Source: Andalucia godoyi And28
Taxonomy: Eukaryota; Protista; Jakobida
Reading direction: 5' to 3'
Assembly: GCA_009859145.1 (NCBI GenBank)
Contig: VRVR01000024.1
Span: 214,870 to 278,869, forward strand
DNA: 64,000 bases
Below are positions 214 to 31,449 of this stretch, piece after piece. Position 1 is the stretch's first letter. Each line of letters starts with the position of its first letter. A program made the translations under genes and the position numbers. Below the pieces are notes generated by a model that was given only the letters and a program-made list of their open reading frames with translations, did not search any database and was not told where the DNA came from.

Positions 214-2267
214 CTACCCTTGAGCATTTCGAGAATTGTTTTCCAGTTGTGCGATCTTTTCCGTCAGAAGCCTTGTCTCTGCTTCTGTTTGTCCTTTGAA
301 CCTGATGAACTCAACGTCCTTATCTTGCAATGCACGGTCCGATTCATTCAGCAGATTCTGCAGTGCTTCGAGACGAGACTCGGCAGCAGCAGCCCTTTCG
401 CGCTCCTCATTGGTCAGCGCAGCACTACCAGACTTCCCCTTTTCAAGCTGTTGGATCTGTTCCTGCAACTCGGCAACCTCCCCTGCGTGCTTCTCTCTCA
501 ATCGGATGAGTTCTATCTCGGTATCTTGCAGCTTTCGATCAGTGTCGTTCAGCGTGTCTGAAATCGCTTGTACCCTAGCTTCTGCAGCATCCGCACGCTC
601 TCGTTCATCCTTCAATGCGCTCGCAGGACTGTCCTTGTGAATCTCTTCAATCTCTGTCTCGAGACCCTTGATGCGCGCTTGGAACCGTGTCGACTTTTCC
701 TTGGTAACCGCAAGCTCATCGGATATCATTGTCTTTTCTGCCTTCTCCCTTGCAACTGCACTTTCAAGCTCGGCAATCCGGTTCTTCAACACACCAATTT
801 CTGCATTGGAGCTCTCTCGAATTCGGATAACCTCGATTTCCTTTTCCTGGAGCTGGTCATCGGTCTTTCGTAGCACGCTCTGCAGCGCAACAACCCGCGC
901 TTCGGCTTCATCAGCCCTGTTCTTCTCGTCCTGGAGAGCGTTTCGGGTCTGGACCGATCCATCTGCCTTCTTTTTAAGATCTTGACACTCCTTATGAAGT
1001 CGATCAATCTCGTTATTCATAAGCCCAGCGTCTTCCCGGAGGTTTTTCGTAAGAGTTCTGAGATGAAGATTCTTTTCCCGAAGCCTGATGATGAGCTCCT
1101 CCTGTTCTTTTGTGGTCCGCAAGGTGCTCGTTTGTTCGGCAACGGTAGACTGTTGGTGGGAAACAACGACCCGGAGTTGCGACGAGAGCTCATCCACAAT
1201 TTTCTGCAGTCTACGGGATTCTGTATAGTATGCTTTGAGCTCCGTTTCGAGCTCCCGGACGCGAGTGTGTCGAATGTCCGTCTTCATCTTTTGCATCGCC
1301 TCCTCCTTTTCAGTTACGGACTTCTCCAGCATTCGAACGCGCATCTTCAAGCTCTTGACCAAATGCATGGACGCACCACCAGCGCCTTGTCCAGCTCCAG
1401 AACCGCCGGCGGAGCCCAGCGTCATGCTCATGCCTGACGACGACGACGTCTTTTGAATATCATCATCCACGTCATGACTGACTGCTTCCTCCAGCATTCG
1501 CTCCTTCTTCGCAAGCTCGCCTTCTGTCTTTGTGAGTTTCGTGCGCAGCTTCAGCACCTCTTCTTCCATTACTCGCATGTTCTTCTTCATGTTGACATTC
1601 TCCATATACAGCGTCTCCGGATCCTGATACATGTTTGCAGGAACCTGTCGCTTCTTCTGCGTCCGCGAGACGTCCTCGTAGAAGTTTTTCAGCGGGCTCG
1701 GTCCACGCATCGCAGGAACCGAAGACGGCGGAAGCTGATGCGCCAGAGATGCCGACGATGGCCGAGAAGTCGCCGAAGTCGGCCTTGCGCTCGAAGGCCG
1801 TGACGAAGATCGTTGCACCGGAGCTGTCACATGTAATAACAATCATAATCATGACAGTCATAGCAACAACAACAACAACAACAACAACAATAATAATAAT
1901 AATAATAACAATAATAATAATCATAATCACAAACCACCACACCATCATTAGCAATTGCTGTACAGTTACCACTATCACGTACATAATAAAAGGAAGAAGA
2001 TAAAAAACAAAATGAAAGAGCAAATGCAAACAGAGCAGGTTTTTCTTTTTTTGCTCGAGAACACATACCAGACGGTGGGCGATTCGATTGCTTGTGAGCG
2101 TATTGAGAAGACCCAGGCTTGCGAACAGCAAACGACTCGTGTTCAAAATCATCATCATCATCGTCAATTGCCACGACTCCAAGATCATCATCTGCGTCAA
2201 AAGAAGGCGGAGCATCACGAAATGGATCGTCGTCTTCGTACCGACGCCGTGAAGAATGATGAGACAT
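214..2267 (-). CDS. IQCE: IQCE-like coiled-coil protein, two exons (2267-2069; 1823-214), intron 1824-2068; may continue left of the window
   Basis: Exon 1 MSHHSSRRRYEDDD...RPPS ends at a GTATGT donor (2068); ACAG acceptor (1824); phase-1 join G|CT restores the frame. 'ETLYMENVNMKK...LRTKL...LKMRVRMLE...KTDIRHTRVRELETELKAYYTESRRLQ' resembles the IQCE N-terminal region. No IQ motif seen within the window. Confidence 0.65.
1863..1930. repeat. (AAC)n/(AAT)n microsatellite inside the IQCE intron
   Basis: Direct reading; explains the poly-V/I/T ORFs in the track. Confidence 0.9.
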
Positions 2268-2902: not shown

Positions 2903-4531
2903 ATGGTCCAGGAAGAAGTGACGTATGATTCTGCATCGAGTGGGTATTTCATTACGTCGGTTGTTGGACTGACGCTGTGGGTCATCATCTTTGCAGTTTC
3001 ATTCATTGTAAAGTACACAAATTCCAGCCAATCCGGACACGTGGAGGACAATGACGGCGGTGGTTGTAATGATGATGATGATGATGATGACAGGGATGCT
3101 GCACTTCCATTTCGAACACGCATCAAGGGCGCTGCAAAGACAATGGGTCGTTCAGGCACAACTCGAGAGCGCATTCCGTTTGTTGCTTCCTGCTTGCTGT
3201 TCTCCACAGGCCTTGACTTTCTGTACTTTTCAAGCGCGACCAACACACCGCTTCCGTTTTGTTTGATGACGAGAACCCAAAAGTTCTTCACAACAATGTT
3301 TCGGTCACTGCCAATCATCGTGAACCTTTTTACGTTCCTGCAAGCCTTTGTCCAAGCAGGTCAAAATGAAAATTTCGAAACGACATTCACTGTTTTTGCT
3401 GCTGCGGTCGTGGTGTTCATGTTTGCGGAATGGTATTTCTTGGCGCAGTGTCTGGCAAACTATGTCTTTCTTTGGGACCTGTTCACCACAAAGCTCCCCA
3501 CCGAGGACCGGTCGTTGCGCGCGGAAGTTCAGAAGCATTGGAGATGGTTTTCTACGTTTGTGATTACGTTTTCCATCGTGACGTTTTCTGTGTTTGTCAT
3601 CTACCTACTGGATCCAGTCTCGACATTTCAGTTTCGTGTCGTGACGTGGTTGCTTAGCTTGCTGTTCTTCTTCGCGTTGACGACGTCGGTGTCGTTGGCC
3701 ATCGTGGTAGCAGGCTTCACAACGGTCCATTTGCTGATCATGCAGGATATGTTCTTGCGCTCCATCGGAAACTCTGCGCCAGCCGAACTTCGGCTCTCCC
3801 AGCCAGGCAAAGCAGTCACAGTCTCGGAAGCAATCGAGGCATTCTTCGATTGCAATAACGCGTTGCAGTCCACGTCGTCCTTGCTGCACTCTTATTTCGG
3901 TCTGGTGTTCGTGCAAGTGATTCTCACGTTTTCTCTCCTGGTGTTCTTTCTCTCCGAAGGATTTGCAGTGAACAATGTCGGGGACCTTGTCGCGATCTTC
4001 GGGCCTCTGATTTCTTACACTTGCGTGCTAACTGTTGCGGCTTGGTCTTGCGCAGTTGCCAATGGCTACAGCACGCGGTTCATTGAGCTGGTGTCGACTG
4101 TGATTGCTGTCGAAGGTTTGCCTGTTTCAAAGGATGAAAAGTGGTCGATTCTTCGTTTTTCCAGAGCGATTACACGGTCTCCACTGGCTGCTGCGTATGA
4201 AGAGCAAAGGAAATCTACCAAGTCTGAAAACTGGAATCTTTACGTCTCGCATATCTTGGACGCAGAAGACAAGACCATGCGCCGGCGTCCGCATCCCCCG
4301 TTACGCAGCGAACAGAGCAGGGATGCGGCAAACAGCGACAGTCTGTTGTCGGATACGGACAAAGTTCGCATGCACGCATTTCTGGCGCATCTAAAAGTTC
4401 GCAGCCCGCAAATCCGCATTCTCGGCATCATTCTGGATGAAGGCACTGTGGTCCGCTCTTCGTACGCAATTTTTGGTCTCACCATGTTTTTCCTGCAGCG
4501 CGCGGTCAGTGGAGGTGCATCGACTCTCTAG
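2903..4531 (+). CDS. Multi-pass membrane protein, Gr/Or-like 7TM ion channel (GRL/7TMIC) candidate 1, 542 aa
   Basis: About 8 hydrophobic helices plus short re-entrant 'LLFSTGLDFLY'; C-terminal TM7-like 'HLKVRSPQIRILGIILDEGTVVRSSYAIFGLTMFFLQR'. Family assignment is inference. Confidence 0.6.
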   Translation: MVQEEVTYDSASSGYFITSVVGLTLWVIIFAVSFIVKYTNSSQSGHVEDNDGGGCNDDDDDDDRDAALPFRTRIKGAAKTMGRSGTTRERIPFVASCLLFSTGLDFLYFSSATNTPLPFCLMTRTQKFFTTMFRSLPIIVNLFTFLQAFVQAGQNENFETTFTVFAAAVVVFMFAEWYFLAQCLANYVFLWDLFTTKLPTEDRSLRAEVQKHWRWFSTFVITFSIVTFSVFVIYLLDPVSTFQFRVVTWLLSLLFFFALTTSVSLAIVVAGFTTVHLLIMQDMFLRSIGNSAPAELRLSQPGKAVTVSEAIEAFFDCNNALQSTSSLLHSYFGLVFVQVILTFSLLVFFLSEGFAVNNVGDLVAIFGPLISYTCVLTVAAWSCAVANGYSTRFIELVSTVIAVEGLPVSKDEKWSILRFSRAITRSPLAAAYEEQRKSTKSENWNLYVSHILDAEDKTMRRRPHPPLRSEQSRDAANSDSLLSDTDKVRMHAFLAHLKVRSPQIRILGIILDEGTVVRSSYAIFGLTMFFLQRAVSGGASTL

Positions 4532-4969
4532 CTCCGTATTTTATTCGTTTCTGTTTTCCTTTTCTTTTTCAATGTTTCGGTGAGCGTGGGTTATGCCTTA
4601 CCAACGTGTCTTTGTCTCTTGCTGTCGTACATTCCAGCTTTTCGGAAACCTGTTGCTGTCGGGATCGATAGTTCAATTTTCAGATCTGCATTTTTCCCTT
4701 TTTCCCCATGAGAGAGGCCTGAGCACAGACGTTCCGTTTCATCGCGAACTTCTGATGGGAGATATTTCCTCCGACAATTCCTTGTTTCGTACATAGCATA
4801 GCATTCTGCTTGTCTTCTCACCTCTCCGTTTCTTCTCGGTTCCCGACGGGCATTATGGAGAGTCAGGCTCTAACGTTGAGTTGAATAGTGTTAAAAAAAA
4901 AAACAGATATTGCTACATTTTCCCTGCGGCCTGCTCCTCATTGCTGATTTTAGACGTTGATTGATTCAA

Positions 4970-6514
4970 ATGTCTTCGAACGCAGCACCCCCGATTAACG
5001 ATGCATCGTCGCCGTATTTCTCTGTGGGATTGTCTGGGATTTGCTATTGTGTAGTCGTATGGTCATTTTCGCTGATTGTCAAGTTCGCTATGGCTTCTTC
5101 AACGTCTCTAGAGGGCAAGAAAAGTGATTTTCGAGCATTTCTAAGTGCTGATGTGGAGGGAAGTCGTGTTCGGGAACGGATGGCGATTCCATTCGTTCCA
5201 CGAGCATTGATGTTCCTCACTGGCTTTGACTATCTCTTTTATGATCAGACTGCCGGTGGAAAGCCAATACGCGCGTCAAAGCTGTCACGATTTCAGAAAT
5301 TTGCCTTCACTCTGCTTCGATCCGTGCCCAGCGTTGCCTCGTTTGCGTTGTTTCTTTCGTCGTTCGTGTACGTCGGCCTCGCAGGCGAATTCGGCACGTC
5401 ATCTCCTTTTACAATATTTGCTGCTCTGGTGGCCATTTGCGCTATATTGCAAATGATCTTTTATCCGGCAAGCTTGCTGTCGTTTAATGATATTTGGGAC
5501 CTCATTACGACGCCGTTGCCAACGACCGATGCCAGTGTGTATTGCCGAATACGATCCGCGTATTCGTCGTATTCATACATGATCTTGGGATACAGCCTTC
5601 TCTTCATTGCGAGTCTGCTTTGCATTTCTGTGACCCCGATCGATTCTTTCCAGTATCGATTGCCACGAGCTGTCATTTCTTTGATCTTCATCATCCACTT
5701 GTCAGTCTCCGGGCTCATGACGACTCTCGTTTCAAAGTTTGTCGATGAGCACGTAGCCATTCTAACAGACTATTTTGTTGTATCCATTACTGCAAAGGCG
5801 CCCCACGTCAACACCACCGTGTCGCTCACGAAGAAGCCGCTGATTCCGATTCCCGAGCTTATCAAATTGTTCTTTGAGTTCGAACGAATTATGCGAAAAA
5901 CAACGATTCCGCTCCCGTTTTACCTTGGACCGCTGCTTATCCAGTTCCTGCTCATTCTCTCCGTTCTTTTCTGGTACGTCTCCGTGGGGCTCTATGTGGG
6001 GAACTTCTTGCTGTTTGTAGATCTCTTCGGTCCGATGTTTGTGTATGCGTTTCTGCTGCTATCGTGTCTGTGGCCGTGTGCAGTCACCAACTCGTCAATC
6101 CACCGGTTTATTGTCCTGTTGTCGTCTGTCATTGCAACGGACCAGCTTTCGCTTTCCATCGACAAAAAATGGAGGCTCATTTCTGAGATGGAACTTGCCG
6201 AGTCGAAATCGTCGTCTGCAAATCTGGGGAATATCAGCGGCGTTGCGCACACCAACATTTGGACCCAGTACACGACTCGTATTTGCCGACCAGAAGAGCG
6301 CGGATCAAAGCCATCCGAAGTCGCAACGCTCTTGTCCGACCAGGACACCATAGCTCTCAAGAGCTTTGTGATGCACTTGCAGATCCAGCGTCCGGAAATC
6401 ACGATTTTGGGCGTTCGCATCACCGAGGGAATTGTCCTTCGTCTCGCATACGCAATCGTCGGTATTATCTTACTTGTAATGCAGCGTGTCCTCGGCGCCG
6501 CCATTACTCTTTAG
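4970..6514 (+). CDS. Tandem paralog, GRL/7TMIC candidate 2, 514 aa (first ATG 4970)
   Basis: Same helix layout; 'LMFLTGFDYLFY' and 'HLQIQRPEITILGVRITEGIVLRLAYAIVGIILLVMQR' align with candidate 1. Confidence 0.6.
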   Translation: MSSNAAPPINDASSPYFSVGLSGICYCVVVWSFSLIVKFAMASSTSLEGKKSDFRAFLSADVEGSRVRERMAIPFVPRALMFLTGFDYLFYDQTAGGKPIRASKLSRFQKFAFTLLRSVPSVASFALFLSSFVYVGLAGEFGTSSPFTIFAALVAICAILQMIFYPASLLSFNDIWDLITTPLPTTDASVYCRIRSAYSSYSYMILGYSLLFIASLLCISVTPIDSFQYRLPRAVISLIFIIHLSVSGLMTTLVSKFVDEHVAILTDYFVVSITAKAPHVNTTVSLTKKPLIPIPELIKLFFEFERIMRKTTIPLPFYLGPLLIQFLLILSVLFWYVSVGLYVGNFLLFVDLFGPMFVYAFLLLSCLWPCAVTNSSIHRFIVLLSSVIATDQLSLSIDKKWRLISEMELAESKSSSANLGNISGVAHTNIWTQYTTRICRPEERGSKPSEVATLLSDQDTIALKSFVMHLQIQRPEITILGVRITEGIVLRLAYAIVGIILLVMQRVLGAAITL

Positions 6515-6890: not shown

Positions 6891-7065
6891 TGTAAAATAA
6901 TCACTCGAAGCAGTCTCTCTCTCTCTCTCTCTCTCTGTCTTTTTCTTTTTCTTTTTCTTTTTCTTTTTCTTTTCATCTTCATCTTCTTCGTCTTCGTCTT
7001 GTTCTTGTTCTGTGTGCACAGCCTCAATAGAGAAGAAGTAGAGTGAAGAAACGTGCGAGATAATC

Positions 7066-7753: not shown

Positions 7754-8212
7754 CTAGACCAACCGAGGGTGCTTCAAACCAGTCGATCCAAAACCTCCTT
7801 CACCACGGTCGGTCGTATCGAGTTCATCCGTATAAGTGATGTCGACAACATCGGGAATGCGTTCAAGGATCAATTGTGCGATCCGATCCCCTGCGTTAAA
7901 AGACACATCAGCGTCTCCCAAGTTGAATAGTAGTACACCAATTTCGGAACGATAATCCGAGTCAATGACTCCAGCGCCGCAGTCGATTCCGTGCTTCAAC
8001 GCAAGTCCCGAGCGTGGCGCCACTCGCATATACCATCCTGGATTGAACGACACTCGAAGTCCTGTCTTCACCAAAAGTCGCGATCGCGCTGGAATCACAA
8101 ATGCCTCCGGCGTCGAAACATCCAGTCCTGCAGAAAACGGAGAGCCGCGCATCAGATCATGCGCCCTGTCATGCATCTTGTGCACTCGCAGCTGAACGTG
8201 GGTTGCAGACAT
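7754..8212 (-). CDS. DUT: Trimeric dUTP pyrophosphatase (152 aa from ATG 8212; in-frame N-terminal extension possible)
   Basis: Motifs SAGLD, VAPRSGLA, AGVIDSDYR, GDRIAQLI, RGEGGFGSTG. Confidence 0.95.
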   Translation of the reverse strand: MSATHVQLRVHKMHDRAHDLMRGSPFSAGLDVSTPEAFVIPARSRLLVKTGLRVSFNPGWYMRVAPRSGLALKHGIDCGAGVIDSDYRSEIGVLLFNLGDADVSFNAGDRIAQLILERIPDVVDITYTDELDTTDRGEGGFGSTGLKHPRLV

Positions 8213-8546
8213 TTTAGATACCCGTGAAAGCATACGCACGTCTTCTTTTTCCACTCTTTCTTTGTAAAATGAATGCCCGTTTTTTTGTTTTTTGTGTGTT
8301 GTCTTTCGATATTTGCAGAGTGGAGCATCTGCGGCGATTCTCTTTGGTTGGGCGGCACAAGGTTTTCCCTTTGGCGCCATAGTTTTACAACTGAGATGAT
8401 GCAAATTGAGGAACACTTCCGACGGTCGGTCCGGGCGATGCAGTGTTTTCGCCCCATCGTGCTTGAATCGCATGAAACGAGCACTCGCAGTAAGAGGGAT
8501 AGAGAGAGGACACGCGGAAAGGAAACAGCCGTCTAAGGTTCTGTTT

Positions 8547-9479
8547 TTACCAATCAAGGCGAGAAACGGCGGCGACTGTCAGGTCGTCCGAAAATCGATG
8601 AATCAGTTGAAACTGGGCTGTCACGAGGTCCAGTCTCCCCAGTAAACGCTCTCCAGTCTTGGCGTCCTTCACCAAAGCATACAGGGCCAGCTCGTCTTCT
8701 GCAGCAAACATGGGGCCTGTAGTCAGCGCATCGACGATAGCAACTTCGCTGTACTGTCCAGTCTTGACATTGATGTGAACGAATGCAATCGATGTATCGT
8801 CGTTCTGGGCTAGCCCAAAGAGCTGCTCTGTTTGTGGGGACCACGACACAAAGTGAATGACAGACGCTTTAGGGACCATCACTAAATCCAAAAAAACGGC
8901 GCTTCCAGGCCGGGTTGCAAAGTCGCCGACTGCCAGTTTTTGTGCCAGAGTCGAGTTCGGCTGCCTGGGGAAGTTGTTCAAGAGTCCGAAATACCTATTG
9001 GATCGGGCATCGTATGTGGATGCGTTGACGTACCACATGTACGGCAATGCTTGGATTGGCCGGTAGGTGACTGTTGGGCCAAGAGAGAGCTGCGACAAGA
9101 TGCGTCCATACATACCATTGACCGCGATTCCATAGAATGCATTCTGCAACGCACTGAACTGAAGATCAAAGTATGAAAGCGACTCTGAAACGTCCAATGA
9201 CACAAGTGACAGCTTCTCATCAAGAATGTACAGTGCTGCGCCCTTGACGCCGCTCGGATAGGCGATCACGTACACCTGCCGGCTGAGAGGATCCGACGTT
9301 GCCTCGGCAAGAGGGAACGGAAAAGAAAAGTGCTCCGAAGAACCCGCAAGAGCGATACCGGTATCATCGTATATCCGTAGTGACGCATTGCCGTTCGAAT
9401 CCTGCAAAAGAGCAAAAAACTTGGCAACACACGAATGTATGACCACCGAAATCAACAAAATACACAAGAGAAGCCTCAT
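8547..9479 (-). CDS. Secreted protein of unknown function, possibly beta-propeller, 310 aa
   Basis: Signal peptide MRLLLCILLISVVIHSCVA; beta-rich repeats ('YDARSNRYFGLL','WSPQTEQLFGLA'). Confidence 0.7.
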   Translation of the reverse strand: MRLLLCILLISVVIHSCVAKFFALLQDSNGNASLRIYDDTGIALAGSSEHFSFPFPLAEATSDPLSRQVYVIAYPSGVKGAALYILDEKLSLVSLDVSESLSYFDLQFSALQNAFYGIAVNGMYGRILSQLSLGPTVTYRPIQALPYMWYVNASTYDARSNRYFGLLNNFPRQPNSTLAQKLAVGDFATRPGSAVFLDLVMVPKASVIHFVSWSPQTEQLFGLAQNDDTSIAFVHINVKTGQYSEVAIVDALTTGPMFAAEDELALYALVKDAKTGERLLGRLDLVTAQFQLIHRFSDDLTVAAVSRLDW

Positions 9480-9893: not shown

Positions 9894-11501
9894 TTAGTGA
9901 TTGAATTGGCAACTCACAACCCGGCCATCTGAGTAGATGCCGAACAGCGAAGTGTTGGAAGCGCACAGCTGGACAGGGATTCCGCTGTCGAATCGAAAAC
10001 CTAGCAGGCGCTTGGAAACAGACCGGTCGGAAACCGCGAATGCCTCCACGGCTCCATTCACAACGTCTCCCACAATCAGCTTGTTACCGGACACACATGC
10101 CAGATATGGATGGTCCTTTTGCAGAGGAGCATCAGCAGAAGGATCCTGCTCCACTTGTGAATATGCGGAATAAGAGGAGTTGATGGTCGTGCGAAACGAC
10201 ACGGTAGGCAGAAGATCAATGATGCGATCGAAACCTTGCGTCGGATACGATCGGTAAGCATGTACGAACCCTGACGAACGACACGCGTACACCCACATAT
10301 TATCCGCAAGCACGTACTCCGTTCCAGAAAACGCATCCGGAACCAATTCAACATAGTTGGACACACACCTATCGGCGGAACATGCTGCTGACGATGAAAG
10401 ATCCCAGACACGAATGGGCGAACGCAGACAATCAAAAGAAACAGCCAATGCGCAGGAATCGAAACAAAAACATCCTTTGCAGATGCTCTGGATGTGCCCT
10501 AGACGCACGGCTTCGCGACTACTGTCAAACAACGTCTCGACGACTGAGTTCGTGTTTCGAAAGTCAATTCTGCGAACGGACGAGCTGCTCGCTGCAATGA
10601 CTTCATTACCCCCAGCCGTTTGCGATGCAACAATTTGATAACGCGAAGCACCAAACGGAGGTTGGCGAACTGCAGATTCGGGATAAGGAAGAAAATTCGG
10701 AACGCATGCAGCCAGTTTTTCTGCTCTGGTGTCCACTAGGCTCAACTGCCCATCTTCCGAACACACACACGCAGTGTCCTCGCTCAAGAACCTGACACAT
10801 TCCAGTCTCTTTCGCTCCTCCGAGATAACAATTCTCGAATCCTCGGCAATTCGGTCCTGCGAAAGACCCATCGAAACGAGTTCACCACTTTCCAGCGAAC
10901 ACGCGACTCGAGGAGTCGTCGCCGAAAGGTCCATTCCAGTCATCTTGTGCCCAAGATCCAGATGAACAACGGAGTCCACTACATTCTGATACTGTCCTGG
11001 CGCATATGCCGATATCACATGGCTCTGGATTGATGACGATGCGGTCAATCCTGCCACAACGAGCCCGACAGAACCGAACACCGAGTTGGAAAACCCGTAC
11101 TGCTTTGGACACATCGCAAACACAAGTTGTGGGCGGAACGGAATCGACGGGAGTTCCAGGGTAAACGAGCCTCGTAGCCACATTCTAGAATCTCGAAACA
11201 CTTTCCAGACGTCCTCCCTGACGCTGATTCGCTGTCTTCCATACGTACTATTCACAGCGTTCGTCATGTGCGGCACCGAGTGACTCGATACGCTTCGTCG
11301 GTCATGGGAGGCCCACACTACTTCCTGGTACGGATCGCATGTAATCAGCGTTTTCCATCCATTGGAGACCGACAGCGCACGAAACAACGTTTCACAATCG
11401 CAGAACTGAAAGATCCGTAGCTGGATTCCTACGGGAACTGCATCCAATGATGCGGACTGAGATGAGCCCGGTTCCGATTCTTCTTCGTCCGGAATGTGCA
11501 T
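9894..11501 (-). CDS. F-box / WD40-like protein, 535 aa (ATG 11501; the track's longer start runs into repeats and the element end)
   Basis: F-box 'LDAVPVGIQLRIFQFCDCETLFRALSVSNGWKTL'; WD-like segments 'EDGQLSLVD','SPIRVWDL'. Confidence 0.75.
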   Translation of the reverse strand: MHIPDEEESEPGSSQSASLDAVPVGIQLRIFQFCDCETLFRALSVSNGWKTLITCDPYQEVVWASHDRRSVSSHSVPHMTNAVNSTYGRQRISVREDVWKVFRDSRMWLRGSFTLELPSIPFRPQLVFAMCPKQYGFSNSVFGSVGLVVAGLTASSSIQSHVISAYAPGQYQNVVDSVVHLDLGHKMTGMDLSATTPRVACSLESGELVSMGLSQDRIAEDSRIVISEERKRLECVRFLSEDTACVCSEDGQLSLVDTRAEKLAACVPNFLPYPESAVRQPPFGASRYQIVASQTAGGNEVIAASSSSVRRIDFRNTNSVVETLFDSSREAVRLGHIQSICKGCFCFDSCALAVSFDCLRSPIRVWDLSSSAACSADRCVSNYVELVPDAFSGTEYVLADNMWVYACRSSGFVHAYRSYPTQGFDRIIDLLPTVSFRTTINSSYSAYSQVEQDPSADAPLQKDHPYLACVSGNKLIVGDVVNGAVEAFAVSDRSVSKRLLGFRFDSGIPVQLCASNTSLFGIYSDGRVVSCQFNH

Positions 11502-11563
11502 TTTACTGAAAATTCGGTGCTTTCGAAACTCACAGTCTGGACCATGCACGCTTCTTTGTTGCT

Positions 11564-11601
<38 letters not shown>

Positions 11602-11731
11602 GGTAGTTGAATACCCAGAGAAGAAACGATCGATTTTGACGACGTGCAGTAAGCAAAATAAAAAACGGGGGGGAATAAATTATACATAAAAAGCAGAAGA
11701 AAAATCCGGCTTAAAGCAGAGATGCCCATGG

Positions 11732-11868
11732 CGCCTACATTGTACACTATCCACGGATAATCATCGCTGATCACCCATAATCAATGCTGCAGCCCAACAA
11801 CAACATGCATGGCATGATTGGGAAGGGGGGTAGGTCCCAACAGGCCCCTCGGCATGAGAGACGTTCTC
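11732..11868 (-). ncRNA. Predicted omega-RNA scaffold of element B
   Basis: GGGUGAUCA-GCGA-UGAUUAUCC hairpin with extended outer stem; UUGGGA/UCCCAA stem enclosing CCUAC, complementary to terminal GUAGG. Confidence 0.65.
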
Positions 11869-13494: not shown

Positions 13495-15285
13495 TCAGGC
13501 AATGGACACTACTTTGACCAAGCCACCCATGCCCTGATCTTCATGGGAAGTGATGTGGCAGTGATACATGAGGATGCCAGTGTGCTGAATGAATCGCACA
13601 CGAGCAGTGACGACGTATCGAGCTGGAACCACGATATCGTCAGTCCAATACGGTCTTTCTAACCACTCCTTTCCCGACAGGTCGCGTACGGAAACGACAT
13701 AGAACGGATTTGCATGCAAGTGAAATGGATGAGACCAATCATCATCCACAAACAGCAACCATTCTTCTGCGGTCCCCAACGTCGACACATAATTGACCAC
13801 ATTCATCTGAAGTATGTCCTGGTTGACGTAGTAGATCTCCCCCGTAAGGCTACCCACCTCCCGAATCAACGTCTTGTTTGACTTTTGAGCGAGAGACATG
13901 TTCATCCACATTGTGCGACTTACTTCTGCGCTTGATATGACAGGCAAGCGAGAGGTCGTAGGGAATGTGCTTGGAATCCCGGGGTCATCCTCCTTTCTGG
14001 GCAATCCGCCAGTTCGGAACTTCAGTATGGTAATGGGATTGTTATTACCATTGTCCTGAAGCTCGAATACTTGATTTGAAATATTCGATCGAAACAGAAA
14101 CTCAATTCGATTGCCAGGACCCAGAGCCAATCCAGCACCAGCTGTCAAGCCCGAGGCATTGGGTGCAAACAAGAAGCCATCTTTCCACGACCACGGCTCT
14201 GCCTGCGTAATTCCATCGACCGCAAAGACAAAGGCATCCAATCCAACCGCAGGGGAAAATCGCAATTGCGCCTGGAACTGGATATTGATGAGCATACGAA
14301 TGCGAACGGTCTCGCCAGGCATGACATCCACAACCGGGATCGCGGAGTCGTTCATCACCGAATTTTGCCAGCTGTTTGTCGTGTATCCAATAGGGATATC
14401 ATTCATAAGAGCAAACACGTAATGTGGTAGCCTCGACTCTCCCACGTAACCCCCTTGGGCAGGACACACAAAGGGAAGCGGATCCGAGTCCAGGTAGCCC
14501 GGAGACACCGTCGAGTTTGCAACCCGGACAAATGAATACGCATACGAAAATTCCCTATACGCATCCAGAAAATCGTCAATGTCTCCTCTGATCCGAAGAT
14601 CCATCACCATCCCATTTGACATTTGCACATCCACGCTCCCGTGTTTGTGCGGATGAACATAAAAGTATCCTGCGGGGTGGTCGATCGGGATGGGAAAATC
14701 GTACAAAAAGTCTTCGCCTGGCTCGATGTGTGTAAACACATTATCTCCATTTCCCTCGACGTTCGTCTGGACGCCATGGGTGTGAAGATTGGTCGTCCGA
14801 AATCCATGCGGATTCAAGAACCCTCTATTCATGGGGTCCACAGCAGCCAGCGAGCTGTTCCAACAGCTTCCGAAATATCCAGGCCACAACCGGTTGGGCG
14901 GAAGTCGATTTTGCACAAGCACCTTCAGAGTGTGGCCGGGTCGTGTTTCAAGAGCCGGTCCAGGCACAGAATGGTTCCACGCCATCAACCTCAAGTCAAA
15001 TCCGAACCATCGCACATTCGTAAACGCAAGCTGGATGGTATAAAAATCAATGTTTTCACTTGACGTGGGTTGCAAGCTCGACGAGTTCTTGTTTGGGGCC
15101 TCGAAAACAAAGTACAAAGTAACCAGCGCTGCGACAGTGCCGACAATGACTGCCGCAATCGCAAATGAAATCACGGTTCTTCGCCGCGATGGCTTCGCCG
15201 AGAAACTCGCATCGACTGCATTCATGGAATTCGGCGTGTTAAGTGGAACATCCGCACGCTCATAGTCTGGAGCACGAAACACCAT
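13495..15285 (-). CDS. Multicopper oxidase with N-terminal membrane anchor, 596 aa (ATG 15285)
   Basis: Four Cu motifs HTHG, YVHPHKHG, HPFHLH, HCHITSHEDQGM; TM 'VISFAIAAVIVGTVAALVTLYFVF'. Confidence 0.9.
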   Translation of the reverse strand: MVFRAPDYERADVPLNTPNSMNAVDASFSAKPSRRRTVISFAIAAVIVGTVAALVTLYFVFEAPNKNSSSLQPTSSENIDFYTIQLAFTNVRWFGFDLRLMAWNHSVPGPALETRPGHTLKVLVQNRLPPNRLWPGYFGSCWNSSLAAVDPMNRGFLNPHGFRTTNLHTHGVQTNVEGNGDNVFTHIEPGEDFLYDFPIPIDHPAGYFYVHPHKHGSVDVQMSNGMVMDLRIRGDIDDFLDAYREFSYAYSFVRVANSTVSPGYLDSDPLPFVCPAQGGYVGESRLPHYVFALMNDIPIGYTTNSWQNSVMNDSAIPVVDVMPGETVRIRMLINIQFQAQLRFSPAVGLDAFVFAVDGITQAEPWSWKDGFLFAPNASGLTAGAGLALGPGNRIEFLFRSNISNQVFELQDNGNNNPITILKFRTGGLPRKEDDPGIPSTFPTTSRLPVISSAEVSRTMWMNMSLAQKSNKTLIREVGSLTGEIYYVNQDILQMNVVNYVSTLGTAEEWLLFVDDDWSHPFHLHANPFYVVSVRDLSGKEWLERPYWTDDIVVPARYVVTARVRFIQHTGILMYHCHITSHEDQGMGGLVKVVSIA

Positions 15286-15686
15286 TTCTGCATCGACGTT
15301 CCCACTCTTACCCAGATTCAAAAAATCCACGTGCCTCTCATGTGTTTTGGAATTGCAGACTTTTAAAAATAACAATAATCATAATCATAATCATAATCAT
15401 AATCATAATCATAAAGTATAAATCATAACAATCATATTAAAAAAATGAAAGGAAAAAGGAAAGAATGCTGAGGAAAAGTCCATTTTGGAGCCTCACTTGA
15501 GTTATTGGCTCCGTGTGCTCATTGCTTTTTTGCAGCCGACAGTAGCAAACGTTCCCGCCAGGAAACGTCTTTTGCTTCTGGCTCCGTTGACTGTTTCTGT
15601 TGGTTTTTTGTTTGCGACATCTTCTCTGCGTATTATTGGCAGACATTATTATTCATCGTTTTTTGAAAGAAACAAAGAAAGAAAGA

Positions 15687-19225: not shown

Positions 19226-19443
19226 GGACTGGGATCTACTCCGATTGGGGAAATCGATTCATTTTCCTGGAATCAGTGGTGCTGTGGCAAGACAAACTTC
19301 TGGTATGATGTTGTTTAATGCTCTACATTGATACAGAAAACGGTCAACCGCTCTCGATCTTCGTTTCCTCGTATCTTCGTTTCTTCATTTTGTCATTGTT
19401 ATCATAGTTGTCATTTGTAGTAGTAAGTAACAAAATAGTAAGA

Positions 19444-20844
19444 ATGAAGATTGTGTGCATTGGAGCGGGGTATGTTGGAGGCCCTACGATGGCCGTGATT
19501 GCGGAAAAGTGTCCCGAGATCCGAGTGTTCGTTCTGGATGTCAATGAAACCCGCATTGCAGCTTGGAACTCAGCCAACCTGGACGATCTCCCCGTGTATG
19601 AACCGGGTCTTTCTGCTGTTGTTGCTGCTCGTCGGAATGTAAACCTGTTCTTCACCACAGATGTGAAAGGCTGCATCCAGGACGCAGATATCATCTTCAT
19701 TGCAGTGAACACACCGACGAAAACATATGGAATTGGCTCGGGTTCCGCAGCGGATGTCTCGTATCTTGAGTCGTGCGCTCGCATGATTGCGCTTCATGCG
19801 GTAGGACCAAAGATTGTGGTGGAAAAATCCACGGTCCCTGTCCGTGCGTCCGAGTCGATCGTTGCAATCCTCGAAGCTTGTGCGTCGGACGATCCTTCGC
19901 GATCGTCGTATGTTGTGCTCTCTAATCCCGAGTTTCTTGCTGAAGGCACTGCAATCGAAGATCTGCGAGTTCCTGATCGTGTGCTCATTGGTGGACCGAC
20001 TACCGAAGCTGGTGAGGCTGCGGTCGAGAAATTGGCGTCCGTGTATGCACACTGGGTCCCTCGACAACGCATCATCACAACAAACACGTGGTCTTCGGAG
20101 CTGTCCAAGCTGACGGCGAATGCGTTCCTAGCACAGCGTGTGTCGTCAATCAATTCAATTGCTGCGATCTGCGAGGCAACTGGCGCAGATGTGGACGAAG
20201 TCGCTCATGCTATTGGACTCGACAGTCGCATCGGACCCAAGTTCTTGAAGGCTTCTGTTGGCTTCGGTGGCTCCTGCTTCCAAAAAGACATTCTCAACTT
20301 GGTGTATCTTGCAGAGACGTTGCACCTGCCCGAGGTTGCCGCGTATTGGCGCGCCGTCGTGGATATGAACGACTTTTCAAGGTTGCGTTTCGTCAAGAAT
20401 GTTGTGCACAAGTTGTTTGGAACTGTGAGTGGAAAGAAGATTTCGATTCTTGGGTTTGCTTTTAAGAAGGATACTGGTGATACAAGAGAGTCATCTGCGA
20501 TTTCAGTGTGCAAATTCTTGCTCGAGGAACGCGCAGTCTTGGAGGTGTTTGACCCAAAGGTGACGCAGAGTCGCATGTACGAGGACTTGAGAGCTGCGGG
20601 TGCAGAGTTTGCGCCGAATGCGCTCTCGCAGCATGTTCACGTTCACTCGAATGCGTATGACACGGTCAGCGATGCGTCCGCGGTACTCATCTTGACCGAG
20701 TGGGACATGTTCAAGACACTCGACTGGAATGTCATTTATGCAAAGATGCGAAAGCCAGCATTCGTGTTCGACGGGCGTCGTGTGCTGGACATCGACGCTC
20801 TCAAGAAGATTGGTTTCCGTGCACACGCTGTTGGACATGCATAG
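19444..20844 (+). CDS. UGDH: UDP-glucose 6-dehydrogenase
   Basis: [54 protein letters not shown]. Confidence 0.97.
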
Positions 20845-20974: not shown

Positions 20975-23900
20975 TTACTCGGGCCACGTGGCCAAAAGTT
21001 CCTCCATCATTGATTTGGTAAGGTTCACTTGCAGAGTCTCGACTGTTTCTGACGTCCGCCGGTACACGATCAGCTGGTGGTCTTTGAACTCATTCAGCAT
21101 CGACCGCAACACAGTCTCGCTGCTCACCAGGAATCGCTCGCGACACTGAATCAGCAAATCATGGAACGACAGCCCGGACTTCAGCTTGGACGACAGATCT
21201 GTTTCAATAAGCAGCTTCAAAACCGATTTTTGATTAAGGGTCAAACTGGCCAAGATAAACCGAATCCCACGATCCACAAGATCCGGTGTAGCGGTCGTCA
21301 CAATCGAACCCGCCTCGACGCCACGATCTCGACGCTCAATGTCATAAAAACCAAATGTTGTCGCCTCGACATGGATCCATCGGAATCGAGAAGCCTTTTG
21401 ATGGTCAAACAACACCGGAGCCGAAACATGGTTTACGGATCCCATCATACGCACATTTTCCTTTGATGCCAATATCGCCAACAGGCTCATGATTTCTCCT
21501 TTGCGCAAATTCTCATGATCCAAGTCGTACACCATAACATAAAGCACGCCTTGACGCGGGAGTTCCTCCAATCCTTCCGGTTGATTGAGCCTCTTTCGAG
21601 TCGAGCGCTTGGATGGCGTACGGTCACGATCCATGGTGCCCGCATCCATGTCCAAGAGATCTGGCTCTTCTCCAGCCAGCACTGCATTGATGGCGTCAAT
21701 AATCCAATGCGCGTTTGCACGAGCTCCAAACTCGTCGTCATCCACCGCTGCTGCCAAAGCCGGATCCAAGTATAGAAGGATGGCACGAAGAGACTTGGTT
21801 AACGAAGTTGCTGTAACAGACTCCCCATGAACAGAAAACAAGTGACCATCGCGAAGACAGCGCTCTCCAAACAAGGTCATCAATCCGCTCTTGTTTCCGT
21901 ATCCTTCCAGCAAGACATTGCTCTTGCAATGCTTCATGTAAAAGGCCCACTCGGAGAACTTCGTGGACGCATACTGCGTAAGGAGATATGTCTGGAACTC
22001 GGAATCGACACGATAATCCGGCCGATCAATGTTAAGAGCTTTTCGACGAAGTGTGGAGGACGCGAGACGCATATCCGCAAGTGTATAGTCCGAAGTCCGC
22101 ACTTTCCCCGTCACGGCATGATTTCGAAAATAGTCGAAATTCCACTTGTGATCATTGTATTCGTACAACAGCACTGGCTTCTGTGTTACGACCTGCTCCG
22201 CCGCGTCGTATGCTGCTTGCTTTTGAGCAGCGTTCTTTGGGGGGTACAGCACATCGAATGGCGGATGCCTGTAAACAATAGATATGCGTCCGGTCAGTGG
22301 CGAGACCTGCCGATACACAAAGAACTGCTTGAGACCTGTGACGGCGTCCCTTTGCAATTTTGCAATCGAGTTCCAGTCAATATTCACAGGACCAGAGCGG
22401 TGAACAATAATCTTTTCCAAAATCGTTTCGCACAGATTCTCATCGACATTATCCGTTTCGAACAGCTCCAGAGGGTGAGTCTTGATGGTCGAGCGTTTAC
22501 CCTCGAACCATGGATCATCAATTCCACAGAGCCACTGCGCTGCGAACCGCGGTTCATCATCCTCTTCGTTGGCATTTTCACTGTCATCGTCGTTTTCGTC
22601 GTCATCAACATCACTGTTCTTCAAGGATCGCTTTCGTCGGTGTCGTGTCGGTCTCTTCTTTTCCAGCTTCTCATCCTTTACACACCGATAAAGATGGTTC
22701 ACAAAAGCCACATACTTGTAAACATCTGGCGGCGTTGGGCGCAAGAAGACTGCATCGCCGACTCGAATTTCCAACTTGTACTTTGCAAGGTAGATTCCTT
22801 CAAAAAACTCTCGGTTTCCAACACGACGAATAGGACTGCCAACCCAGGTGTACCGAAACTCATTTCGGTCCTCTGCCGTCATACCAGCTCTCCGAACACG
22901 AGCCTCCTCGGACTCATCTTCTGAGGAGTCCACATAAAACCTCCAGGACCCAATTTCACTGGGGATGCGCGCTGCAATGTCCTCGTTCTCTTCCAGCTCT
23001 TCGCCATCCTGGTTGAGCGCAGAATCAACAATCTTTCCAGCAGCGCCCTTCCTTCTTTTCATTGCCGGCTCACTAACGGGAGTAGTCGTCTTGCGGTTAT
23101 GTGAAGGCGCGGGCGTCACAGGTTGCGGCGCAGGGATCTTCAGGCTTGACGAAGGCGACATCGAACCGATGCGGTCATTCTTGACGAGAGCCTTCGTAGC
23201 GCTACTCGGCGGAACATACGCAGATTCCTTTTTCTCCTTCAACTTTGGCAAATTCTTAATGAAGGAGCTCTTCTTTGGTTCTGTCGCTGGTTCCTTGGTC
23301 AACTTTGCTCGTTTTGTTCCAGGCGTTCGAACGCCATCACTCGGTACATCTACTGGCACATCTTCAGCACTATCCTCAGACTGTGATGAGGACGACAAAT
23401 CCGAGTCGAAGTGACGAGGTGGTCGAATAATTCTCCCTCTGCTGGATGACTGCAGCACAGTTTTCGGAGGGCTGAGCCGCTTTCTGCTTTCCTTCTCCAA
23501 TCGAACCATGCGCTTCTTTTCCAGCTCATCGTCCTCGCTTTCTGACGGACTCGTTGATTTTGGTTTGGATGGAGTCTTTCTGTGAGCTGCCTCGACACTG
23601 CCGTGCATTCCATCCCCATTATGAACACTCTCATTACCATCCCCATTGCTCGCCCTGCCAACAACCGCGCCCCTTTGCGATTTCTGTTTCCCAGTCGCTG
23701 CAACTTGTGCAAGTGGACAAGCAGCAAGACCCTGCGCACTCGAAGTCGAATGCTGCGCGGTGGTCTCACTCTCAAGGGGAGGTCGCAGGAACGACGGCAA
23801 GGGCACGCGATGGTCTCCAGCTTCAATACCATACTTTTTCGCGAACGGCAGCAATCTCTGCAGATAGTGCTTCCGAATCCAGTACACTCCCGACGTGCAG

Positions 23901-24109
23901 GTTTCGTTCAGTGGAAACTGAGATGCAATTCCCGCCCATGCAGAAATCGCGTCCGAGCCCCCGGCCTGCTGCACAGCAAAGTAGAGTCGCCGAAGATCGA
24001 CCTGACAGCCGCCCAGCGTTGGATTCCACACGGGTGCAGAGATCTTTTGCAATTCGTAGTATGAACGTACAAACGACAGGAACGCCTGGCCATCTTCATC
24101 GTCCCCCAT
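20975..24109 (-). CDS. ORC2: ORC2 with N-terminal ARID and central BAH domains, 1044 aa
   Basis: ARID 'VDLRRLYFAVQQAGG...W..IA..F...IRKHYLQRLLPF'; BAH 'IRVGDAVFLRP...VAFVNHLY...AQWL...ELFETDNVDENLCETI'; ORC2 'NVLLEGYGNK','SVNHVSAP','EATTFGFY','CRERFLVSSETVLRSMLNEFKDHQLI'. Confidence 0.85.
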   Translation of the reverse strand: MGDDEDGQAFLSFVRSYYELQKISAPVWNPTLGGCQVDLRRLYFAVQQAGGSDAISAWAGIASQFPLNETCTSGVYWIRKHYLQRLLPFAKKYGIEAGDHRVPLPSFLRPPLESETTAQHSTSSAQGLAACPLAQVAATGKQKSQRGAVVGRASNGDGNESVHNGDGMHGSVEAAHRKTPSKPKSTSPSESEDDELEKKRMVRLEKESRKRLSPPKTVLQSSSRGRIIRPPRHFDSDLSSSSQSEDSAEDVPVDVPSDGVRTPGTKRAKLTKEPATEPKKSSFIKNLPKLKEKKESAYVPPSSATKALVKNDRIGSMSPSSSLKIPAPQPVTPAPSHNRKTTTPVSEPAMKRRKGAAGKIVDSALNQDGEELEENEDIAARIPSEIGSWRFYVDSSEDESEEARVRRAGMTAEDRNEFRYTWVGSPIRRVGNREFFEGIYLAKYKLEIRVGDAVFLRPTPPDVYKYVAFVNHLYRCVKDEKLEKKRPTRHRRKRSLKNSDVDDDENDDDSENANEEDDEPRFAAQWLCGIDDPWFEGKRSTIKTHPLELFETDNVDENLCETILEKIIVHRSGPVNIDWNSIAKLQRDAVTGLKQFFVYRQVSPLTGRISIVYRHPPFDVLYPPKNAAQKQAAYDAAEQVVTQKPVLLYEYNDHKWNFDYFRNHAVTGKVRTSDYTLADMRLASSTLRRKALNIDRPDYRVDSEFQTYLLTQYASTKFSEWAFYMKHCKSNVLLEGYGNKSGLMTLFGERCLRDGHLFSVHGESVTATSLTKSLRAILLYLDPALAAAVDDDEFGARANAHWIIDAINAVLAGEEPDLLDMDAGTMDRDRTPSKRSTRKRLNQPEGLEELPRQGVLYVMVYDLDHENLRKGEIMSLLAILASKENVRMMGSVNHVSAPVLFDHQKASRFRWIHVEATTFGFYDIERRDRGVEAGSIVTTATPDLVDRGIRFILASLTLNQKSVLKLLIETDLSSKLKSGLSFHDLLIQCRERFLVSSETVLRSMLNEFKDHQLIVYRRTSETVETLQVNLTKSMMEELLATWPE

Positions 24110-29897: not shown

Positions 29898-30192
29898 GTC
29901 CTCGATCCTACGAAAAATATTCCTTGTTCGCAGCAATTGGTATCCTTTCCTCCCCCACCCAACAACAACGGCAACAACAGCAGCGACAGAGCCTGCTCAC
30001 CCAAACCACGAATTACACAGCTCCATGCGCCTGCGGAATCGGGGATTTGTTTCATCGGACCTTCCCTCTCTGTAGCGCATCGTTCGTAGTATGCATCTCA
30101 ATGACTGGGACCCATCCCTTTTGCTGATTGTCGTCAGTCACGCAGGGTGTCTGGTTGGCTATGAGAGTGTGTGGCGTGGAAAAGGCACAGCC

Positions 30193-31449
30193 ATGCGAAG
30201 CGGGACCGAGATGCGGACACTGCAGGTGTTGTTTGTGGTTGGTGCGCTGGTTGGTGCGCTGGTTGGTGTTGGTGCGGTGCATGCGAGCTCGCAGTGTGTT
30301 ATTACCGACTACGGCGCCGTTGGGGACGGAAAGACAGATTGCATGGTTGCGATCCTCAAGGCGATTGCGGCGTGCGCGGGGAATGTTCAGACTCCTGTCG
30401 TGGTTCCCAGTGGTGAATTTCTGAGCTCGCCATTCAACCTGACTTCAAATCTCGCACTTGTTTTTGAGAAGAATGCAAAGCTGGTCGCGGTGTCAGATGC
30501 AAGTGCGTATCCGGTTGTTGCTCCGTTGCCTTCGTATGGAGCTGGCAGAGAATCCAAGTACTATCGGTATGCTCCTTTTGTGGGTTGTTACGAGTGTACG
30601 AATCTTTACATCCTGGGCCACGGAGATGGATCTTCTGTGATTGATGGATCTGGGGATTCCTGGTGGCTCGCGCATCGGGAAAAGAAGCTCACGATCACTC
30701 GGCCGCACTTGATGGAGATTGCATACTCGAAAAACATACACATTGAAGGGATCAAGCTTGCAAACAGTCCTTTTTGGACTCTTCATCCGTATGTGTGCGA
30801 CCAGGTCGTAATTCGCAACGTGCATACGTTTGCACCGGCCGTTAGTCCAAACACCGACGGCATTGACCCGGACTCGAGCACGAATGTTCTCATTGAGAAC
30901 TGTCTGCTGGAAGCTGGCGATGACGCGATCTCCATCAAGTCCGGGATCAACGAGTGTGGGCGAGCGTACGGACGGCCGTCGGCGAACGTTACCGTTCGAA
31001 ACTCCTTCTTTGGACCGTCCTTGGGTTTTGCGATCGGGTCGGAAATGTCTGGAGACGTGTACAATGTGACTGTCGAGCACTGCACTTTCTCAGGAAGTGT
31101 GAACGCTATCCGTTTTAAGACGGGCCGCGGGCGAGGCGGCCGAATGTTTGACATTGCATTTCGAAACAACACGGTTGACGGTGTCGCACAAGCTATCTTT
31201 GTCAACGAGTACTACGCGCATGTCGATCACCAGCTTCCACCAGTCGAAACACCTCGCCTGTATAATGTCGAAATCACCGGTCTTCGGGGAGTAGCCGTAG
31301 AAGCCGGTACGTTTGCTTGCTTGCCAGAGGCTCCGTGCCAGTTTGTTCTCAGGGACATCGAAATTGCTGCGCCTGTGGGATTCAAGTGTGAAAATGCCAC
31401 TGGTTCTGCGTCGAGTGTGTTTCCAAAGAGCTGCCTTGTCCCTTCTTGA
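30193..31449 (+). CDS. Secreted GH28 polygalacturonase-like enzyme (start 30193 or 30211)
   Basis: Signal peptide; SPFWTLHP, PNTDGIDPDSS, GDDAISIKSG, IGSEMSG, RFKT. Confidence 0.9.
   Translation: MRSGTEMRTLQVLFVVGALVGALVGVGAVHASSQCVITDYGAVGDGKTDCMVAILKAIAACAGNVQTPVVVPSGEFLSSPFNLTSNLALVFEKNAKLVAVSDASAYPVVAPLPSYGAGRESKYYRYAPFVGCYECTNLYILGHGDGSSVIDGSGDSWWLAHREKKLTITRPHLMEIAYSKNIHIEGIKLANSPFWTLHPYVCDQVVIRNVHTFAPAVSPNTDGIDPDSSTNVLIENCLLEAGDDAISIKSGINECGRAYGRPSANVTVRNSFFGPSLGFAIGSEMSGDVYNVTVEHCTFSGSVNAIRFKTGRGRGGRMFDIAFRNNTVDGVAQAIFVNEYYAHVDHQLPPVETPRLYNVEITGLRGVAVEAGTFACLPEAPCQFVLRDIEIAAPVGFKCENATGSASSVFPKSCLVPS

Follow-up and report, generated by a model that had tools for sequence, protein, structure and literature searches.

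A tandem pair of candidate 7TMIC/GRL-type membrane proteins with an extra N-terminal helix in a 64-kb DNA window

Introduction

Seven-transmembrane ion channels (7TMICs) form a superfamily that takes in the insect odorant and gustatory receptors (Or/Gr), the gustatory receptor-like proteins (GRLs) of animals and protists, and the plant DUF3537 proteins. Members have already been published in protists, plants, prokaryotes, and kinetoplastids, and thousands are known across the tree of life. Here, we describe two tandem genes at positions 2903 to 6514 of a 64-kb stretch of DNA, referred to below as the window, whose products probably belong to this superfamily; we regard their membership as well supported though not proven. 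Since 7TMICs have been reported from such a range of organisms, the gene pair is not a new kind of protein. New are its lineage, an additional N-terminal membrane span, and the implication for the age of the Class-A type of the superfamily.

In Discoba, the only 7TMICs described so far are the kinetoplastid GRL1 proteins, which possess an N-terminal MORN-repeat region and have no similarity in primary sequence to the rest of the superfamily (Benton & Himmel 2023, eLife 12:e85537). Class-B (PHTF-like) members have a long loop between transmembrane helices 2 and 3 (TM2-TM3), and the Class-A/B split has been placed after the last eukaryotic common ancestor, with the kinetoplastid proteins branching earlier (Himmel, Moi & Benton 2023, bioRxiv 10.1101/2023.08.30.555482).

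Two diverged paralogs in tandem

The locus consists of two genes and the spacer between them.

2903..4531, plus strand: gene 1 (P0001), an intronless open reading frame (ORF) of 542 amino acids (aa) with an ATG start, encoding a candidate 7TMIC/GRL-type membrane protein
4532..4969, no strand: spacer of 438 bp between the tandem paralogs
4970..6514, plus strand: gene 2 (P0002), an intronless ORF of 514 aa counted from its ATG; the ORF listing opens at a TTG at 4961 (517 aa)

For gene 2, the most likely start is the ATG at 4970, the 514-aa form being the protein-collection entry. The two proteins are 31% identical from end to end (BLASTP, E 2e-73), in agreement with a preliminary description of this DNA that had proposed two diverged tandem paralogs, and a tblastn search revealed no third copy of the pair in the 64-kb window. 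The same description had quoted two motifs, one in a proposed re-entrant segment (S0) ahead of TM1 and one in TM7. Every quoted residue proved invariant between the paralogs except the closing Tyr of the first motif, which is Y/F-F/Y across the two proteins. In gene 1 numbering, the identical residues are L98, F100, T102-G103, D105, and L107 in the first motif, and H496-L497, P502, I504, I506-L507-G508, G514, V516, R518, Y521-A522-I523, G525, and Q532-R533 in TM7.

Paralog identity is highest in S0 (48%), in the cytosolic extension of TM6 (55%), and in the two halves of the split TM7 (TM7a, 47%; TM7b, 48%), and lowest in TM3 (8%) and in the loop between TM6 and TM7a (17%). This profile mirrors the pattern reported superfamily-wide, in which the anchor, the pore, and S0 are conserved and the ligand-side helices are variable.

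A GRL-like TM7 signature at the C-terminus

The sequence evidence for a relationship to 7TMICs comes from the TM7 region at the end of both proteins.

4343..4510, plus strand: gene 1 TM7a-hairpin-TM7b, the superfamily signature; TM7a at residues 484-497, a 15-aa hairpin, and TM7b at residues 513-536
6329..6493, plus strand: gene 2 TM7a-hairpin-TM7b, residues 454-508; in the core numbering of its AlphaFold2 (AF2) model, helix 392-406, beta hairpin 411-420, and helix 421-448

As a reference, the 17 GRL/DUF3537 proteins of unicellular eukaryotes listed in Supplementary file 1 of Benton et al. 2020 (eLife 9:e62507) were aligned with MAFFT, and the resulting profile was compared by hhalign with a three-sequence alignment of the two paralogs and a further homolog, ANDGO_02065 (see below). 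A single local match was obtained, joining query residues 492-535, which comprise the end of TM7a, the hairpin, and TM7b, to the extreme C-terminus of the 17 GRLs (44 columns, Prob 90.4%, E 1.4e-6). Against the same GRL profile, the reversed query gave E 0.27. With residues 480-542 as the query, the native score was 44.0, compared with 10.5 +/- 1.9 (maximum 18.2) for 100 column shuffles (z = 17.8). When eight GRL subgroups were run separately, the best local match lay at the same C-terminus-to-C-terminus position in six of them, the best E values being those of Vitrella GRL3-6 (0.004), chlorophyte DUF3537 (0.008), and Thecamonas GRL4-6 (0.013). The reverse search pointed to the same genes: the window has 557 six-frame stop-to-stop ORFs with a length of 60 aa or more, and of all these, a hidden Markov model of the 17 GRLs put gene 1 at rank one (E 0.001) and gene 2 at rank two (E 0.052).

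Over their last 62 residues, the 20 proteins were aligned by MAFFT without a gap through the TM7 region (55 columns). Shared with the Vitrella, Protostelium, Thecamonas, and chlorophyte proteins are F/L-x-(H/Y)-L at the end of TM7a, P-x-h-x-h-x-G in the linker, an Arg ahead of TM7b, and the motif Tyr, while 'LQR' is common to the family and Vitrella GRL3-6. The likeness extends to the linker of the Andalucia godoyi homolog, which reads 'PQFTVLG' where Protostelium has 'PMQFTVLG'. The animal motif (T/S)Yhhhhh(Q/K/E)(F/L/M) is matched at three, two, and three of its four positions in the family (SY.....xM, xY.....xL, and SY.....xF); the Q/K/E position is never kept, and gene 1 contributes S520, Y521, and M528. 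Protist GRLs keep one to three of these positions, and the motif has been called 'diagnostic, but not definitive' (Benton et al. 2020). According to the same authors, it is a feature of animal GRLs and 'largely unrecognizable' in plant DUF3537, so that the preliminary description erred in treating a TYhhhhhQF-like motif as common to the plant proteins as well.

Predicted structures resemble insect Gr/Or proteins

Ahead of TM7, gene 1 is divided as follows.

3170..3238, plus strand: gene 1 candidate S0/TM0 re-entrant segment, residues 90-112, 'IPFV..L.F.TG.D.L'; 48% paralog identity; a short helix and beta bridge in the AF2 model
3272..4111, plus strand: gene 1 TM1-TM6 bundle, residues 124-403; in the AF2 model TM1-3 are 31-37 aa and TM4-6 are 44-45 aa with cytosolic extensions
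4112..4342, plus strand: gene 1 long intracellular TM6-TM7a loop, residues 404-480; predicted local distance difference test score (pLDDT) < 50; 17% paralog identity

AF2 models were obtained for full-length gene 1 protein from a two-sequence alignment (pLDDT 47, predicted template modelling score [pTM] 0.42) and for residues 66-514 of gene 2 protein from a three-sequence alignment (pLDDT 52, pTM 0.47). Both place a short S0-like helix followed by a beta bridge ahead of TM1, and the seven helices TM1 to TM7 were recovered in both models and by hydropathy. In both, TM1-TM3 measure 31-37 aa and TM4-TM6 43-50 aa (44, 45, and 45 aa in model 1; 45, ~50, and 43 aa in model 2), a long disordered loop follows TM6, and TM7 is split into a TM7a of 14-15 aa, a beta-hairpin linker of 14-15 aa, and a TM7b of 24-28 aa, with pLDDT 30-55 in this region. 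The gustatory receptor BmGr9 has an S0 helix and an S0-S1 beta-hairpin; its S4-S6 helices are 52, 53, and 45 aa long, the range in BmGr9 and MhOr5 together being 45-54, and the S7a/linker/S7b boundaries are 15/14/21 in BmGr9 and 15/13/25 in MhOr5 (PMC11100771). The helix-length plan predicted by both models appears to be in close agreement with these boundaries.

In Foldseek searches of 350,542 PDB chains, the top match of model 1 was BmGr9 (E 0.23, probability 0.92, template modelling score [TM-score] 0.41), and its only other matches with a TM-score > 0.25 were Gr43a, MhOr5, Gr64a, and an Or/Orco complex, the remainder, ABC exporters and TTYH among them, scoring around 0.1. The six best matches of model 2 were all insect Grs, led by BmGr9 (8vc2_A; E 0.012, probability 1.00, TM-score 0.42, 407 aligned columns). 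Across the models, TM-scores were 0.28-0.42 for insect Gr/Or proteins, versus 0.1-0.2 for ABC exporters, TTYH, and pore-forming toxins. Thus, the models, each of a different paralog, converge independently on the insect Gr/Or fold family. Release of the first Orco structure postdates the training cut-off of AlphaFold2, and the models were made without templates. In this comparison of AlphaFold models with Gr/Or structures, which the preliminary description had proposed, the models are of low confidence and no TM-score exceeds 0.42.

Topology and the extra N-terminal helix

Both paralogs begin with a hydrophobic helix ahead of the superfamily-type core.

2942..3016, plus strand: gene 1 extra N-terminal TM helix, residues ~14-38; hydropathy peak 2.39; AF2 helix 14-42; predicted N-out/C-in
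5018..5098, plus strand: gene 2 extra N-terminal TM helix, residues ~17-43; hydropathy peak 2.11, together with the charge distribution

Eight hydrophobic spans and a short conserved amphipathic S0-like segment were found in the paralogs. In hydropathy plots (Kyte-Doolittle, 19-mer), an N-terminal hydrophobic span precedes a charged loop, after which come a conserved segment of weaker hydrophobicity and a series of strong spans. The additional N-terminal helix suggested earlier is confirmed by these peaks in both proteins and is present in ANDGO_02065 as well, and none of the 17 published unicellular GRLs (0/17) has an isolated N-terminal hydrophobic peak. The long TM6-TM7 loop noted in the preliminary description is also real, with a length of about 70-80 aa and the 17% paralog identity given above; DUF3537 proteins provide a precedent for such a loop, which corresponds to the third intracellular loop (IL3) (Benton et al. 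2020).

Orientation was assessed under an assumed topology consisting of a superfamily-type core, with TM1 running from inside to outside and the C-terminus outside, preceded by an N-out extra helix. Under this assumption, the ratios of Lys plus Arg inside to outside are 35:1, 31:1, and 29:1 in the three family proteins. The extracellular loops EL1, EL2, and EL3 measure 6, 10, and 8 aa, and the intracellular (IL) segments 25, ~51, and ~131 aa including helix extensions. The bias in Lys plus Arg places the start of the core inside and the C-terminus outside; because of the extra N-terminal helix, the true N-terminus is predicted to be outside. The 7-14 residues preceding this helix contain no Lys or Arg and the loop following it contains six to eight (seven in gene 1), which favors a reading of the helix as a true N-out signal-anchor-like span combined with a re-entrant or peripheral S0. 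A membrane-crossing S0 fits the charge distribution less well. Cleavage of the helix as a signal peptide is unlikely, considering its hydrophobic stretch of ~22-25 aa, the lack of positive charge before it, and the basic residues after it.

A small and isolated family

HMMER, run exhaustively over 1.84 billion cluster representatives, yielded one further homolog (E 6e-8), ANDGO_02065, a hypothetical protein of 566 aa from the jakobid flagellate Andalucia godoyi. It is known only from EukProt, and its architecture matches that of the pair, with the N-terminal helix and the C-terminal motifs present as well. If the window is from A. godoyi, the products of gene 1, gene 2, and ANDGO_02065 would be three paralogs in one species. 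Within the EukProt part of the protein collection, the exact protein of gene 1 is a singleton. In a word-index search of 5.8 billion proteins, neither the individual proteins nor the three-sequence alignment retrieved anything beyond the query's own entry, a scan of metagenome contigs found no homolog, and an Rfam scan of the window gave nothing relevant.

No mention of jakobids or Andalucia was found in the published 7TMIC papers or in one supplement. The published screens were based on the AlphaFold database and NCBI clustered nr, and the occurrence of the family proteins under EukProt only, within the collection searched here, suggests that they lie outside the AlphaFold database and NCBI nr. 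The family is probably unreported and was probably missed by the earlier screens.

Relation to described branches of the superfamily

The unicellular GRLs and chlorophyte DUF3537 proteins (Vitrella GRL3-6, Protostelium GRL1, Thecamonas GRL4-6, and proteins of Chloropicon and Micromonas) resemble the gene pair in a TM7 signature that aligns without gaps and is significant in profile comparison, in a length of ~500 aa, in a seven-TM core with short outer loops, and in being encoded by intronless genes. The long TM6-TM7 loop is a likeness to DUF3537 and Vitrella proteins in particular. In contrast to all of these, the pair has the extra N-terminal TM helix, and the similarity is detectable in TM7 only. 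Their hosts represent other eukaryotic supergroups, whereas the only homolog of the pair comes from a jakobid (Discoba).

For both models, the best structural matches, and essentially the only meaningful ones, were insect Gr/Or proteins (BmGr9, 8VC1/8VC2/8UVT; Gr43a; Gr64a; MhOr5, 7LIC; and Orco). The pattern of helix lengths and the dimensions of the split TM7 are alike, and the S0 helix followed by a beta bridge resembles BmGr9. Two to three of the four TM7 motif positions are kept in the gene family, and the Q/K/E position is lost. The differences are considerable: identity in the structural alignments is about 10-12%, at TM-scores of 0.36-0.42 with low-confidence models; the TM4-TM5 loop has ~19 aa in the gene pair versus 57 in BmGr9, and the TM6-TM7a link ~80 versus 5; and the pair carries an extra N-terminal TM helix.

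With kinetoplastid GRL1 (Kineto7TMIC), the pair shares the overall fold class. However, the C-terminus of GRL1 lacks the P-x-h-x-h-x-G hairpin signature of the pair, and no MORN repeats were detected in the pair by Pfam. In hhalign comparisons with seven kinetoplastid GRL1 sequences, the gene family gave E 0.069 and the 17-GRL profile itself E 0.067. Orthology to GRL1 is rejected on the absence of MORN repeats and of sequence similarity (E 0.069). PHTF-like Class-B proteins have the superfamily fold and a comparable position of TM7a and hairpin, but the TM2-TM3 loop (IL1) of the gene pair is at most 25 aa. A comparison of the gene family with two PHTF C-termini gave E 0.42, a test of low power with two sequences only. 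Assignment to PHTF/Class-B is rejected on the short IL1 and the absent similarity. Given the lack of MORN repeats and of GRL1 similarity, the short IL1, and the DUF3537 precedent for the long TM6-TM7 loop, the family looks, judging by sequence signature and architecture, like a very divergent Class-A-type GRL.

Weighing the assignment and its alternatives

Several observations speak against placing the gene pair in the 7TMIC superfamily. None of the Pfam families 7tm_7, 7tm_6, Trehalose_recp, and DUF3537 was matched at E <= 10, the sole Pfam match of any kind being a chance-level one of protein 1 to DUF2615 (E 0.54), and sequence searches of the PDB with the single protein and with the profile returned nothing; published protist, kinetoplastid, and PHTF members were likewise recognised by structure and not by primary-sequence search. 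Outside TM7, the TM0-TM6 core showed no significant profile similarity to GRLs in hhalign, and its global score was no better than that of block-permuted controls. The best local core match joined the TM5 cytosolic extension to the same region of the GRLs (E 0.013); it is positionally sensible, and we give it no evidential weight. With a family of only three sequences, both AF2 models came out at low confidence (pLDDT 47 and 52), and their TM-scores remain below 0.5. There are eight rather than seven spans, with a predicted outside N-terminus contrary to the rule in this family, and functional characterization within the superfamily is confined to its animal members. The preliminary description's attribution to the Gr/Or superfamily is thus upheld by the TM7 profile match, the helix architecture, the topology, and the Foldseek results, and weakened by the low-confidence models and the missing Pfam matches.

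The missing Pfam and PDB sequence matches, a significance limited to about 45 residues, and the low-confidence models with TM-scores < 0.5 would all be expected of a lineage-specific multi-pass membrane family unrelated to 7TMICs, with a C-terminal likeness that is convergent or due to chance and Foldseek matches that reflect generic long-helix bundles. We consider this explanation unlikely in view of the z value of 17.8 over shuffles, the recurrence of the match at the same terminal position in six of eight independent GRL subgroups, and the TM-scores of 0.28-0.42 for every insect Gr/Or protein compared with 0.1-0.2 for other long-helix membrane folds; moreover, the topology, the loop asymmetry, and the 14/15/24-aa split of TM7 agree with the superfamily. 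Still less probable, to the point of being negligible, is that the ORFs are annotation artefacts or decaying pseudogenes and not expressed genes. The pair has no close orthologs, as such a reading would have it, but the ORFs are uninterrupted over 514 to 542 codons and align over their whole length at 31% identity, the structural elements hold most of the conservation, a third homolog has the same architecture, and EukProt lists both proteins as predicted gene products.

A weightier alternative, to which we assign somewhat less than even chances, accepts the 7TMIC fold and descent and questions the function: the proteins might not be chemosensory ligand-gated channels. They might reside in internal membranes, form a constitutive, light-, lipid-, or mechanically-gated channel, or have a non-channel role, as considered for DUF3537, PHTF, and most protist GRLs. 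In the literature consulted on the superfamily, knowledge of function is confined to arthropods and nematodes; sorting or regulation might be the task of the extra N-terminal helix and of the long charged cytosolic loops; and the family has only three members, whereas chemoreceptor repertoires are usually expanded. On the other hand, conservation is strongest in the pore-lining and anchor regions, the Orco subunit-interface and gate motif positions are largely kept, and a tandem duplication after which TM3 and the outer bundle diverged fast (8-30% identity) is as expected from ligand-binding diversification.

Possible mode of action and significance

We rate the chances of channel function of the gene pair as evenly balanced and a chemosensory role as doubtful. 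A flagellate host is plausible, considering the axonemal-type dynein heavy chain encoded in the window and the homolog from a jakobid flagellate. If the 7TMIC assignment holds and the proteins act as the solved insect receptors do, four subunits would assemble via an anchor in the cytosol, built from TM7a and the extensions of TM4-6, either as homomers or, by analogy with Or/Orco, as heteromers of both paralogs. TM7b would form the wall of a central cation pore, the hydrophobic residue at its gate position being M528 (L and F in the relatives), and the conserved Ser/Tyr of the TM7 motif would lie at the subunit interface. The outer half of the TM1-6 bundle might bind a small ligand, and the extra N-terminal helix would leave the first ~13 residues on the extracellular side.

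How insect chemoreceptors arose is under active study, and a Discoba lineage with a Class-A-like TM7 signature bears directly on the dating of their origin; horizontal transfer is an alternative raised by Class-A-like proteins in Discoba. It is tempting to speculate that a jakobid-type flagellate keeps Class-A-type 7TMICs with the canonical GRL TM7 signature, the first 8-TM N-out variant of the fold, and possibly an obligate Or/Orco-like heteromer, although we would hold this combination to be rather improbable. The extra N-terminal helix would indicate that the 7TMIC fold can accommodate an additional span. Practical impact is modest, protist members being without established function.

Genomic surroundings

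The window is compact and intron-poor, with genes on both strands. This organization fits the published description of the A. godoyi genome, a compact genome of ~20 Mb in which most genes lack interruptions and adjacent genes often point in opposite directions (PMC7050145). Every window protein that was looked up is a singleton cluster found in EukProt only. The window probably derives from A. godoyi or one of its close relatives; a kinetoplastid origin is rejected on the mixed strand orientation of the genes and on the PF00692 type of the dUTPase. At 41757-55478 (plus strand), a dynein heavy chain is encoded by one uninterrupted ORF of 4573 aa with all motor domains and an axonemal DYH2-5-8 coiled-coil signature, and this single-ORF dynein supports a flagellated, intron-poor source organism.

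Five neighbours have no evident functional link to the receptor-like pair: a 542-aa protein at 214-1842 (minus strand), without a Pfam family, whose repeated charged-residue-rich sequence suggests a coiled coil; a multicopper oxidase at 13495-15375 (minus strand); a UDP-glucose dehydrogenase at 19408-20844 (plus strand); a Ku70/80-type protein at 31742-34111 (plus strand); and an NIF/CTD-like phosphatase at 37504-39192 (plus strand). At 20975-24109 (minus strand), a 1044-aa ORF encodes an ORC2 homolog with RecA-like and winged-helix domains, an N-terminal ARID domain, and a weak BAH match, an unusual combination for ORC2. A polygalacturonase-like protein of glycosyl hydrolase family 28 (GH28; E 1e-44) is encoded at 30091-31449 (plus strand); a pectin-degrading-type enzyme is unexpected for a bacterivorous flagellate and may reflect horizontal transfer.

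A dUTPase (PF00692) is encoded at 7754-8557 (minus strand), with an N-terminal extension of about 130 aa when read from its TTG start; its real start is uncertain, and as listed the ORF overlaps that at 8547-9479 by 11 bases. Microsatellites are present around the gene pair, namely, (AC)24 at 3-51, (CAA)9/(AAT)13 at 1864-1927, (AG)16 at 2387-2429, and (TCTTTT)6 at 6938-7011. A further one, (AC)16 at 11566-11598, lies inside the 5' part of the ORF at 9894-11774, which suggests that the true start of that gene is located further downstream.

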